A model generated the notes under the pieces. It did no database searches. It saw nothing but the letters and a program-made list of their open reading frames with translations, and had not been told where the DNA came from. A DNA stretch of 64,000 nucleotides from the NCBI GenBank assembly GCA_965240325.2, contig OZ251255.1, positions 248,001 through 312,000 of the forward strand. The letters run 5' to 3'. Below are positions 2,352 through 62,509 of this stretch, in pieces. Numbering within the stretch: position 1 is the stretch's first letter; every line of letters begins with the position of its first letter. A program made the translations under genes and the position numbers. The DNA is from Rebecca billardiae RCC1528 (Eukaryota > Protista > Haptophyta).

Positions 2352-2605
2352 CACTACGTGTACTCAACTGTAGGGGGGCCAAAGTGGCACTGTAGCGTTA
2401 CTGACGGCCACGAGCGCGGGTCCTAGCGAGTGTTTAGAGCTGATTTCGGGCTGGATCATTTGCCCTCTGGAGGGGTCTGGGCCGGCCATGTAAAAAAATC
2501 AGGTGCACATACCCTGAATATAGGGCGTAACGGCTAGCATATTTACTTATTAGAATGAGCCTGAACTTATTGGAAACGGCATATAACGGTCGTCCTATAT
2601 GTGAC

Positions 2606-3327
2606 TGTTGAGCTGACGCAGCCTGGGGCGCGCATCTCAGCAGATGGCGTCGCCGCTGGGACGTCAGGGCCGGCGCCGCACCAGGCGGGCCGGCGGCATC
2701 AGCTACGCAGTGGCTGGCTCTGGCGGCGCGCGCGCGCGGCGCGCGCGGCGGCAGGAGCGCGAGCGCAGCAGCGCTGGCGCGGAGCGACGTGGACGCGGAG
2801 CGCGGACGCGGCAGCGCGGACGCGGAGCGACACGGACGCGGCGCGTGCGCGGGCGGTACGGCCCGGCGCAGCGCGGCACGGATGGCACGCCGGCGGCACA
2901 GGCGGGCGCCATCGTGGAAGAGTCCAAGGAACAACGGACTCGATCACTTCATTCATGGACGCCCGGATTCTCAGTTTTGAGAATCGAGAATCCGGGATCA
3001 TGGGTCCGTGCGCAGCTTACCCAGGTCCGATGACATTACCGAGTACCTGGGGGAAAGATGAGCTTACGGCGGTGCGTCGGTAACGCCTGCGATTGGCGGA
3101 CGCACGGAAGCGGGGCTCAGGAAGGTTACAAGATTCCCGAGCCGGGCCGCAAAACGCCGTGTCACCCTGCGCAACCGAAAGTTGGTTGCGGCAGGAGGAT
3201 TAGCTTCGCTCGTCAGAGGAGCGAGGGTCGAGATTGCCTTCGTGGGCGTCACCGACGACGCGCCCGAGGACGTGCCGGTGAGCTCTTAGCAGGGCTCGAG
3301 ACGCTCGGAGCTCGCGTTTACCCAATA
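2606..3327 (+). repeat. Copia-A 5' LTR (TGTTG...CAATA)
   Basis: Direct repeat of 9287-10008, apparently identical (the ORF-track peptides match). Confidence 0.96.
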
Positions 3328-60891: not shown

Positions 60892-61217
60892 TGTCAAAGG
60901 GTGAAGAGAGCGACGGGGCCGTGAGGCCCGAGGCGTGACGCTGAGGCTCGTCGATGCGAAGGACGAGGAGCTAGGAGTTCGACTCGAGGTGCGGTGAAGC
61001 GACACGAAAACTGAACTGCCCTGGCGAGGAAGGAATCCCGAGCCGTCTAAGACTGTGCTGGAGGCACTGATAGCCATCAACGGGTAAGTCGGGAAAGTGG
61101 CCATGATGGGCGCGTGTATGATCCCGACTCGATAATGAATGTCGGTGTAGTGTGACGGTTGGTGATCCGGGTGTGTACGCACGGGAGAGCGAGTCCGGGT
61201 AACGTTGGATCTTGACA
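60892..61217 (-). repeat. Copia-B 5' LTR
   Basis: Direct repeat of 54464-54789. Confidence 0.96.
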
Positions 61218-62509
61218 CAATGAATTCAATGAATCCGAATTCAACGTTTTTCCGACTCTCCCAAATGGCGCCTAAATGCAGTGGATCGCGCTCCAGCAGC
61301 TCAAGGCCGCGCTCAAGCAATCCGATCGCGGTGCAGGCTATGCTCTGCCACCAACGCCGACTTCGTGTCGACGATCGGGCACTGCCGCCGACGAATCAGT
61401 AGGTGGGTCCCTCCCAACTGGGGCGATATTCTGGCGCACTCAGAATGGCGTCCTAGATTTCGTCTCTCACCCAGAATCGACGCTATAAATGCGTCCCATC
61501 GGGGCGGAGCAAAAGTTTCGACCTCAAAACCTACTCCGCGTGCCATCGCGCGGCCGAGCGCGCGCGCGCCGCGCCACTAGTCACTAATCAGGAGACCCGC
61601 GTCGTCCTACCTGTGTCGTTAAATCATAGAATGAGTCTAGAGGCGCTGAATGTGACCCTACAGCGTGTCAGACTTCCTCCGAGTCGGCGGCGGCGCTGGC
61701 TCAGACACCCTGCTCGAGGTCCTGCACCCGTGCAGCAGGGTCTCCGTGCAGGACCTCGCTCGGCGCACGCGTGCGCGCAGCCGAGTGAGCCGTGACGCTG
61801 CCGTGGCCTTGTCGGCGGCCTTTGCCAAGAGCCGAGAATTCTCGCGGTCCGTTGGCGAGGCGGAGGTCCCTAAAGAGCGCCGATGGCCGAGTGCGGCGCT
61901 TGATGTACTTGGCGGCATCATCCACAGCAGTCCTCAGCCACTAGCCAGTCCGCAGCTCACTGGACGCCGATGCACCGGTGACGCCCGCTAGGTCGCGCCG
62001 TCGCGGTGCTGTGGAACTTAGCCGATCCGACGAACTCCAGCACACAGTCCGATTCTGAGTTCTGACGAGTCTGCGTGAATCTGCTGCTTGCTTATTGATG
62101 ATGCCGTGTATGGGGGCGGAATGGGTGCATGTTGTGCGCACTGCTACAGTCCATGAGTCATGACTCGCCGTCGGTGGCCCCGCGGTCACAGCCCCGCACG
62201 CCGCGCTCGGCGCGCACGCGGCAGCGCTGCACACACAGTATTACTAGTCACTGCTACTACTGGTCAGGAAATCATTGAATCCTGCCGCGATTCAGTGTCA
62301 ATGAATTCAATGATTCATTGAATTTTATTTTTCATTGATTCAATGTTCGGCATCCCTGCTGCGGCGGGCAAGACTTGCTGTGGCTAAAATCCCCTTTTTA
62401 CCCCGGGCGAGAAAATCCAATCTACTCTACTTAATCGTGTCGTAAAGTGGATCCGCGCGGCAGGTGCGTGAGCAATAAGAAAATGCCCACAATTCGGACT
62501 TTCCCTATG

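Follow-up and report, generated by a model that had tools for sequence, protein, structure and literature searches.

Two copia insertions at palindrome centres in hAT-like transposons of the alga Rebecca billardiae probably reflect ordinary nesting

Two copia retrotransposons in the genome of Rebecca billardiae RCC1528 sit exactly at the centres of perfect palindromes within hAT-like DNA transposons, and it is quite probable that they are two ordinary and very recent nestings of different Ty1/copia families, with the centring on palindromes following from the site preferences of the elements themselves. The window, i.e. the whole stretch of DNA that was analysed, comprises 64,000 nt of the assembly GCA_965240325.2 (contig OZ251255.1, positions 248,001-312,000), and the nesting in AT-rich transposon DNA that is seen in it is real. 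The 37 other copies of the two families that were studied do not follow any palindrome rule, and the case is therefore probably one of ordinary nesting, steered in each family by its own preference for AT-rich or two-fold-symmetric sites. Palindrome targeting was an attractive lead but a wrong one, and it is now closed; what has been gained is a concrete set of rules for how two copia families of a very GC-rich alga choose their target sites.

Both retrotransposons are intact Ty1/copia elements with unambiguous 5-bp target site duplications (TSDs), and the two families are young and probably active. Copia-A (2606-10008, plus strand, 7403 bp) has LTRs of 722 bp (2606-3327 and 9287-10008) that are 100% identical, two overlapping open reading frames (3327-5948 and 5540-9250), and the TSD GTGAC (2601-2605 and 10009-10013) with its centre base at 2603. 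Copia-B (54464-61217, 6754 bp) is coded on the minus strand and has LTRs of 326 bp (54464-54789 and 60892-61217), also 100% identical, the TSD CAATG (54459-54463 and 61218-61222) and a polyprotein of 1918 aa (55056-60812, minus strand) that carries the domains rve, SH3_retrovirus and RVT_2. Its PBS side adjoins position 60891, and a partial duplicate of the LTR start is found at 60812-60867. The LTR boundaries were set from the neighbours of the 5' versus the 3' LTR and from other members of the families, all with 5-bp TSDs. The Pfam domain RVT_2 was matched with E = 2.7e-33 in copia-A and 3.9e-51 in copia-B. The integrase lies upstream of the reverse transcriptase (RT) in copia-B, where rve covers residues 1038-1116 and RVT_2 residues 1435-1679, and the same order is found in copia-A, in which the rve_3 match is weak and the integrase region (residues 211-495, upstream of RT at 725-983) has 27% identity to the integrase of copia-B. 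The initial annotation called the two elements unrelated, which is too strong for two Ty1/copia elements that both have RVT_2 and that share 32% amino-acid identity over RT-RNase H, besides the 27% over the integrase. As regards the tRNA primer-binding site and the polypurine tract that should adjoin the 5' and the 3' LTR, respectively, the LTR is adjoined by TGGTGGAGCC on the coding strand of copia-B, and a G-rich tract is located at the opposite end; copia-A has a G-rich tract too and no TGG-type primer site, its LTR being followed by TGCATGCA.

The element that copia-A has entered, host A (2371-11495), is non-autonomous and hAT-like, with the terminal inverted repeat (TIR) TAGGGGGGCCAAA at 2371-2383. 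The left arm (2371-2605, plus strand) contains the left half of the palindrome (2595-2602), and the right arm (10009-11495, plus strand) contains the right half, which extends to 10019, and the right TIR, which ends at 11495. About 10 bp upstream of the left flank there is a (TA)n microsatellite (2226-2352). The host-A family is a young one and has many members: there are 161 candidates, and at least 40 copies in the genome have an identity of 97-100%. Host B (54386-62358, hAT-like, TIR CAGGGATGC) is flanked by perfect copies of the 8-bp TSD CTGCGGCG (54378-54385 and 62359-62366). Its left end (54378-54463, plus strand) holds the TIR at 54386-54394 and a subterminal array of the 9-bp unit TGAATTCAN, and its right arm spans 61218-62366 (plus strand), with the right TIR ending at 62358. 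Within the right arm there is an extra nested insertion (about 61283-61629) that is absent from 7 paralogues and that itself contains a very abundant element of about 184 bp (about 61397-61581). Motifs of the type TGAAT/ATTCA cluster in the first 100 bp and the last 85 bp of host B, and A+T amounts to 65% in the terminal 100 bp compared to 37-38% inside. Both hosts resemble non-autonomous hAT elements of the Ac/Ds type in their short TIRs starting with CAGGG or TAGGG, the absence of a transposase ORF and the clustered short subterminal repeats, and host B also in its 8-bp TSD. Host A differs from them in that its flanking 8-mers, ACTCAACT and ACTCAAGT, agree at only 7 of 8 positions, with an offset of one extra base on the left.

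The rebuilt empty sites are CTATATGT-G-ACATATAG for copia-A (site A) and TGAATTCA-A-TGAATTCA for copia-B (site B), both with perfect 8-bp arms, centred in site A on the middle base of the TSD and in site B likewise on the TSD. The reconstructions are confirmed by unoccupied genomic matches, 123 for a 33-mer of site A (with at most 3 mismatches) and 2 exact plus 4 near ones for a 34-mer of site B. Rebuilt sites and unoccupied paralogues agree that both insertions are centred on perfect 8+1+8 palindromes, as had been claimed from the start. The same is true of their location about 230 and 75 bp inside the left TIRs of non-autonomous hAT-like elements, measured here as 232 and 75 bp from the TIR tip, and of site B as a subterminal motif of its host, as it sits within four tandem TGAATTCA units. 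At control centres from the same loci, perfect arms of 8 bp or more occur at a frequency of 0.03-0.16%. Two perfect palindromes out of two are improbable under a naive null, but the family-specific rules described below take away most of the surprise.

In all, 20 insertions of family A and 19 of family B were rebuilt, the two in the window included; the family-A sample represents 20 of about 40 elements, and the genome has about 85 copia-A LTR ends. Perfect 5-bp TSDs were present in every one of the 39. With the window excluded, the number of dyad matches per 8 pairs is 2.32 for family A and 2.00 for family B, and when the centre is shifted, over all sites, it is 2.00 and 1.90, so that the symmetry of the 37 other sites is at the background of about 2.0. 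Arms of at least 6 bp were found in one of these 37 (B_C7c, with 6-bp arms). The family rules predict 0.49 such sites per 39, and the probability of at least one among the 37 is 0.37, which matches the expectation; B_C7c, the third palindromic site, obeys the complete family-B rule. When the discovery sites are counted, three sites of 39 with arms of this length still exceed the expectation conditioned on the rules (P = 0.0135). The palindrome of site A exists in at least 124 genomic copies, and despite the roughly 40 copia-A elements only the copy in the window is occupied.

Hitch-hiking of retrotransposon and host as a composite element had also been suggested, with the prospect of finding the same composite at other loci with new 8-bp TSDs. 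A genome search with the junction pattern of copia-A matched the locus in the window only, and since the hAT::copia junction is present just once there is no sign of such hitch-hiking. Flanks in common with site B were found in none of the 18 other family-B insertions. A scan for TIRs with 8-bp TSDs within ±1500 bp of the 39 sites returned only the two hosts in the window, the rest being GC-rich chance matches.

What the insertions of family A do have in common is A/T-rich DNA close to the TSD. Of the bases that lie 3-7 bp away from the centre of the TSD, a fraction of 0.82 is A/T, and this falls to 0.35 beyond 640 bp. Scored at ±3 to 7, an interval that was picked after the A/T profile was known, the 19 other sites have 8.05 A/T out of 10 compared to 2.75 in the background, and a score of 8 or more is reached by 13 of the 19, compared to 1.6% of background positions. 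The palindrome centre is the sole position with 10/10 in the 1717-bp host A, one of 11 with at least 9 and one of 50 with at least 8, and by a plain 21-bp A/T measure it is one of 71 equally AT-rich positions of the host. The rule of family A can be put as AT-rich islands and (TA)n tracts as targets. The initial annotation named a preference for AT-rich DNA as the outcome that would speak against its own proposal, and this preference is the one that family A follows.

The preferences of family B are more specific as to bases, and are here given with the window excluded. A at -5 or T at +5 is present in 21 of 36 half-sites (P = 2e-5), the centre is G or C in 17 of 18 sites (P = 1.4e-4), and A or T is found at ±1 in 26 of 36, which gives the rule ANNNWSWNNNT. 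Site B has A at the centre, unlike the G/C of 17 of the 18 other sites. Within ±40 bp of site B there are 7 positions that fit the rule, 4 of them palindrome centres, and in the array of 9-bp repeats in host B only the palindromic register offers A-5/T+5. The A/T enrichment around family-B sites is about 0.50 over ±80 bp, and not sharply local.

We think that the insertions are probably to be explained in the following way. Both elements went into the AT-rich DNA near the ends of their hosts, and such DNA forms rare islands in a genome with about 72% G+C. Each integrase probably has a two-fold-symmetric site preference, and a perfect palindrome with a good half-site then serves both halves together. 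Family A requires that the TSD be flanked on either side by A/T-rich DNA (±3 to 7), and family B favours A and T at -5 and +5, respectively, A/T at ±1 and G/C in the centre. That these family-wide preferences come into play during integration, by way of an integrase multimer that is itself symmetric, is what we infer, and the same explanation has been put forward for LTR and TIR elements whose target motifs are palindromic and AT-rich (PMC3276498, PMC6911290). Perfect palindromes at single insertion sites of LTR retrotransposons need neither cruciform nor transposase targeting, and probably arise where a symmetric integrase preference meets palindromic, AT-rich subterminal transposon DNA.

It seems very improbable to us that the integrases instead recognise DNA structure, either the cruciform proposed in the initial annotation or a hairpin, where a perfect palindrome is extruded. 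Among the 39 sites there are two 17-bp palindromes and one of 13 bp, all perfect and each centred exactly on the TSD, and only 0.1-0.25% of control centres are this palindromic (P = 1e-4, discovery sites included). This naive enrichment was discarded as evidence, as it counts the discovery sites and ignores the site rules of the families, and the excess vanishes for the non-discovery sites under those rules. The remaining 36 sites are not palindromic, 123 identical palindromes are empty, and the (TA)n tracts that both families use have no pairing around the centre of a 5-bp TSD (0/8 matches). When the three palindromic sites were folded as single strands, the hairpin free energies were -4.0 (z = -1.1), -7.1 and -3.8 kcal/mol, and with arms of 8 bp around a 1-base spacer the stem has no more than 5-6 bp, mainly A·T; as the hairpins are this weak, the cruciform reading is rejected. 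It is just as hard to believe that integration is essentially random and that the AT-rich, nested pattern is a residue of purifying selection in a gene-dense genome. The genome is GC-rich (that it is gene-dense is so by the initial annotation's description only), and the regional character of the A/T enrichment in family B would fit. Against this, the A/T peak of family A, 3-7 bp from the TSD centre, is too narrow for selection on gene disruption, family B has base-specific and dyad-symmetric preferences at -5, 0 and +5, and the LTRs are 99.5-100% identical in many copies, which leaves little time for selective filtering.

There is also a possibility, which we find rather unlikely, that family B, and perhaps further copia families of this genome, are actively guided to sites 30-80 bp inside the ends of DNA transposons, the guide being a transposase, some host protein or a feature of the chromatin there; the palindrome of site B would then be incidental, but not its position near the TIR. 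It is similarly doubtful that family B, with its relatives at 76-78% in the LTRs, has its sites about 30-80 bp inside the TIR termini of several unrelated transposon families in general. For 9-10 of the 19 family-B insertions (7 of the 19 being unclassified for repeat context), the end of an interspersed repeat is 27-78 bp away, with the insertion on the inner side, and several clear TIRs are among these ends. The distances are 75 bp for B_win, about 45 for B_C3, 37 for B_C25b, 43 for B_C18 and 50-78 for B_C7b, while B_C12b lies 66 bp from the end of another copy of the host-A family, and B_C12a and B_C13 lie 27-37 bp from the end of a 120-bp element, in which, on the other hand, every position is near an end. 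When repeats were looked for by comparison with about 180 kb of sampled sequence, 7 of the 19 sites proved to be within a repeat and less than 90 bp from a real alignment end, compared to 6.2% of local controls (P = 9e-5); all 7 sites inside repeats are near an end, compared to 44.5% of the controls that fall in repeats (P = 0.0035), and a per-locus permutation with A/T matching expects 2.3 where 7 were observed (P = 6e-4). Matching for A/T does not wholly remove the bias, but pooled A/T-matched nulls give only P = 0.013-0.056, a hand-combined Fisher test on the distance relative to the length of the element yields about P = 0.03-0.05, and both the pattern and the 90-bp threshold are post hoc. 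Of two prospective checks one was positive, as B_C25a was found 43 bp into a TIR of 43 bp, which elsewhere also makes up inverted pairs of 167 bp, and the other was negative, as B_C30 has unique sequence around it and is 192 bp away from a repeat. The host ends come from unrelated element families, and no single transposase could therefore act as a tether. A preference for transposon ends, as first proposed for both elements, is suggestive for family B and absent in family A, where a single site of the 20 falls into a repeat that was detected. The repeat-end bias (with P between 6e-4 and 0.05 according to the null used, and post hoc) is compatible with a bias towards DNA-transposon ends, which it suggests but does not establish. 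We know of no description of an LTR retrotransposon that targets the termini of DNA transposons, and if true, family B would use transposon ends as a landmark or safe haven, which would be a new kind of safe-haven targeting. Tethered LTR retrotransposons are represented by Ty1 and Ty3 at Pol III genes, Ty5 at Sir4 heterochromatin, Tf1 at promoters, and the chromoviruses. The sole point that family B shares with them is a possible analogy, integration at a set distance from a landmark, and it differs in that the landmark ends belong to unrelated transposon families and in that the bias itself is not established.

Ordinary nesting guided by integrase preferences has known counterparts. Plant LTR retrotransposons nest non-randomly and with a weak preference for palindromes (Jedlicka et al. 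2019, PMC6911290), and they are similar to the families described here in the nested insertions, the weak palindrome bias and the use of regions with low fitness cost. The difference is that they are LTR elements inside LTR elements, whereas the hosts here are small TIR elements of hAT-like type, with a possible bias to their ends. The rice Ty1/copia element Tos17, for which the palindromic target consensus ANGTT-TSD-AACNT is quoted in PMC6911290, likewise combines a TSD of 5 bp with a dyad-symmetric flank preference that is ascribed to a multimeric integrase. It differs from family B in bases and positions (A-5, T+5, W at ±1 and S in the centre for family B), from family A in that the latter has only A/T richness at ±3 to 7, and in its host, a plant and not a very GC-rich alga. 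In Drosophila, all LTR and TIR families tested have palindromic, AT-rich target motifs (Linheiro and Bergman 2012, PMC3276498), and a weak palindromic consensus at retroviral integration sites is attributed in the same paper to Wu et al. 2005 and Holman and Coffin 2005. As in the families described here, these motifs extend past the TSD, are two-fold symmetric on average and mostly AT-rich, and are matched only in part by single sites, as is the case for 37 of our 39. The Drosophila families with TSDs of odd length have the least information at the centre, whereas family B has its strongest preference, for G or C, at that very position.

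The genome of Rebecca billardiae RCC1528 comprises 72 Mb in 41 contigs, and the window, with a G+C content of about 72%, contains two pairs of long direct repeats that delimit two LTR elements. Copia-A (2606-10008) has LTRs of 722 bp that are 100% identical and is flanked on each side by GTGAC; copia-B (54464-61217) has LTRs of 326 bp, also 100% identical, CAATG flanks, and a polyprotein of 1918 aa on the minus strand. Both encode RVT_2 (copia-type RT) with an integrase upstream, and the initial annotation was right in calling them copia elements but not in calling them unrelated, as they share 32% identity in RT-RNase H and 27% in integrase. 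They are distinct copia lineages. The proteins of copia-A lie in two overlapping frames, 3327-5948 and 5540-9250 (873 aa and 1236 aa), and its LTR ends in TA followed by TGCATGCA in place of a TGG-type primer site. In copia-B a second copy of the initial 56 bp of the LTR, along with the adjoining primer-site-like sequence, lies at 60812-60867, immediately inside the 3'(+) LTR.

Each element interrupts a non-autonomous hAT-like element, host A and host B respectively, and this anatomy was correctly read in the initial annotation: copia-A is inserted 232 bp, and copia-B 75 bp, from the tip of its host's left TIR. Host A (2371-11495; 1717 bp without copia) has the TIR TAGGGGGGCCAAA; its family is young, and at least 123 copies, at least 40 of them full, are 97-100% identical. 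About 85 copia-A LTR ends are found genome-wide, many elements being 99.5-100% identical to the window copy, and both families look recently active. Host B (54386-62358) has the TIR CAGGGATGC, a perfect 8-bp TSD and TGAAT/ATTCA clustered at each end; its A+T content is 65% in the terminal 100 bp and 37-38% in the interior. It carries an extra insertion at 61283-61629 that is missing in seven paralogues, and is therefore a three-level nest. Within this insertion lies an element of about 184 bp (about 61397-61581) that recurs genome-wide in hundreds of copies at 98-99% identity (888 candidates at first look).

Once the copia element is taken out with one of its two TSD copies, site A reads CTATATGT-G-ACATATAG and site B reads TGAATTCA-A-TGAATTCA, and both are indeed 17-bp palindromes with perfect 8-bp arms whose axis is the middle base of the TSD. 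The LTR boundaries of copia-A cannot be shifted because the bases adjoining the 5' and 3' LTRs differ, and those of copia-B because other members of the family fix the LTR end and the 5-bp TSD length. Unoccupied paralogues, found with a 33-mer of site A (123 genome matches at three mismatches or fewer) and a 34-mer of site B (2 exact and 4 near matches), confirm both reconstructions.

It had been proposed that the two elements are targeted to palindromes, as cruciforms, or to transposase-bound ends, and that they hitch-hike as composites. LTR searches of the genome gave loci with 1.5-kb flanks, to which 14 further loci were added, and from these we rebuilt 20 sites of family A, which cover some half of all copia-A copies, and 19 of family B, each family being one of the two elements together with its relatives across the genome. 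All 39 insertions have perfect 5-bp TSDs. Arms of at least 6 bp occur at 3 of the 39 sites, with 0.49 expected under the family rules (P = 0.0135), but two of these three are the discovery sites; the other 37 give one, GATGAT-C-ATCATC at B_C7c, the sole other long perfect arm (P of at least one = 0.37). With the window excluded, an average of 2.32 of the eight flanking pairs are complementary in family A and 2.00 in family B, against about 2.0 for shifted centres in the same sequences, so that dyad symmetry elsewhere is at background. The hairpin energies of the sites are small. Despite the roughly 85 copia-A LTR ends, a genome-wide search with the junction pattern in both orientations found the site A palindrome occupied in the window copy alone, and the 123 copies matched by the 33-mer are empty. 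The hAT::copia composite is therefore present only once, and nothing suggests movement as a unit. Neither palindrome or cruciform targeting nor hitch-hiking is supported.

We think it probable that both sites result from site preferences of an ordinary kind, symmetric, AT-biased and particular to each family, that act on the AT-rich ends of transposons. In family A the requirement for A/T is sharp and local: the A/T fraction is 0.82 where the offset from the TSD centre is 3-7, and it drops to 0.35 beyond 640 bp. Of the 10 positions ±3 to 7, an average of 8.05 are A/T at the 19 sites outside the window, against 2.75 for background, and a score of 8 or more is reached by 13 of these 19 sites and by 1.6% of positions in the background. 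In host A only the palindrome centre scores 10 of 10; it is one of 11 positions that score at least 9 and one of 50 that score at least 8. When A/T is measured more coarsely, over 21 bp, 71 positions in host A are equally AT-rich, the palindrome centre among them. The target motif of family B is dyad-symmetric: with the window excluded throughout, 21 of 36 half-sites carry A at -5 or T at +5 (P = 2e-5), 26 of 36 carry A/T at ±1, and 17 of 18 sites have G/C at the centre (P = 1.4e-4). In the TGAATTCAN array of 9-bp repeats, the register centred on N is the only one that combines A at -5 with T at +5; seven positions within 40 bp of site B fit the rule, and four of them are palindrome centres of that register. 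The local A/T requirement of family A would thus lead to the exact palindrome centre of host A, and the motif of family B to the palindromic register of the host B array. Such behaviour has already been described for LTR and TIR elements, whose target motifs are palindromic on average, mostly AT-rich and reach past the TSD, which has been ascribed to the flexibility of the DNA and to an enzyme complex with two-fold symmetry (PMC3276498; PMC6911290, which cites Tos17).

About 2% of the genome sequence lies in 21-bp windows whose A+T content is 62% or more, and such DNA occurs in (TA)n tracts and transposon subterminal regions. Both families use (TA)n tracts, A_C38, A_C25, A_C32 and B_C8 being inserted within pure ones. 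Two independent copia-A insertions (L010/L011 on C37 and L063 on C8) have the same TSD, GACGA, with TGAT(T)ATATATA after it; either one short repeated motif beside (TA)n tracts was struck twice, or the agreement is due to chance. In the window (TA)n microsatellites are frequent (2226-2352, about 10 bp upstream of the left flank of host A; 11836-11860; 12140-12155; 42430-42620; 43537-43700).

The sole part worth following up is a possible preference of family B for transposon ends, for which the evidence is suggestive. About half of the 19 insertions (loci L031-L060 and L068-L073; for instance L045/L046, L057/L058 and L072), all but seven of which were classified for repeat context, are located in an interspersed repeat, 27-78 bp from its end: 75 bp in the window copy, 66 bp in B_C12b (inside another copy of the host A family), about 45 bp in B_C3, 37 bp in B_C25b, 43 bp in B_C18 and B_C25a, 50-78 bp in B_C7b, and 27-37 bp in B_C12a and B_C13 (within a 120-bp element). 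At least five of these ends are of TIR type, from unrelated families. The excess, with repeats detected against a small genome sample, has P = 9e-5 relative to control positions at the same loci, 0.0035 given a location inside a repeat, 0.013-0.056 with pooled A/T-matched controls and 6e-4 by per-locus matched permutation; the pattern was spotted post hoc, after inspection of the data. Family A shows no such pattern. Of two sites tested later, B_C30 lies in unique DNA and does not fit, and B_C25a does. A 43-bp TIR at L046:1458-1500 recurs at C3:4463870-4464036 and C27:1109579-1109745, where it forms inverted pairs of 167 bp that look like a MITE, and the same TIR bounds an element of about 2.2 kb on C25 that holds B_C25a.
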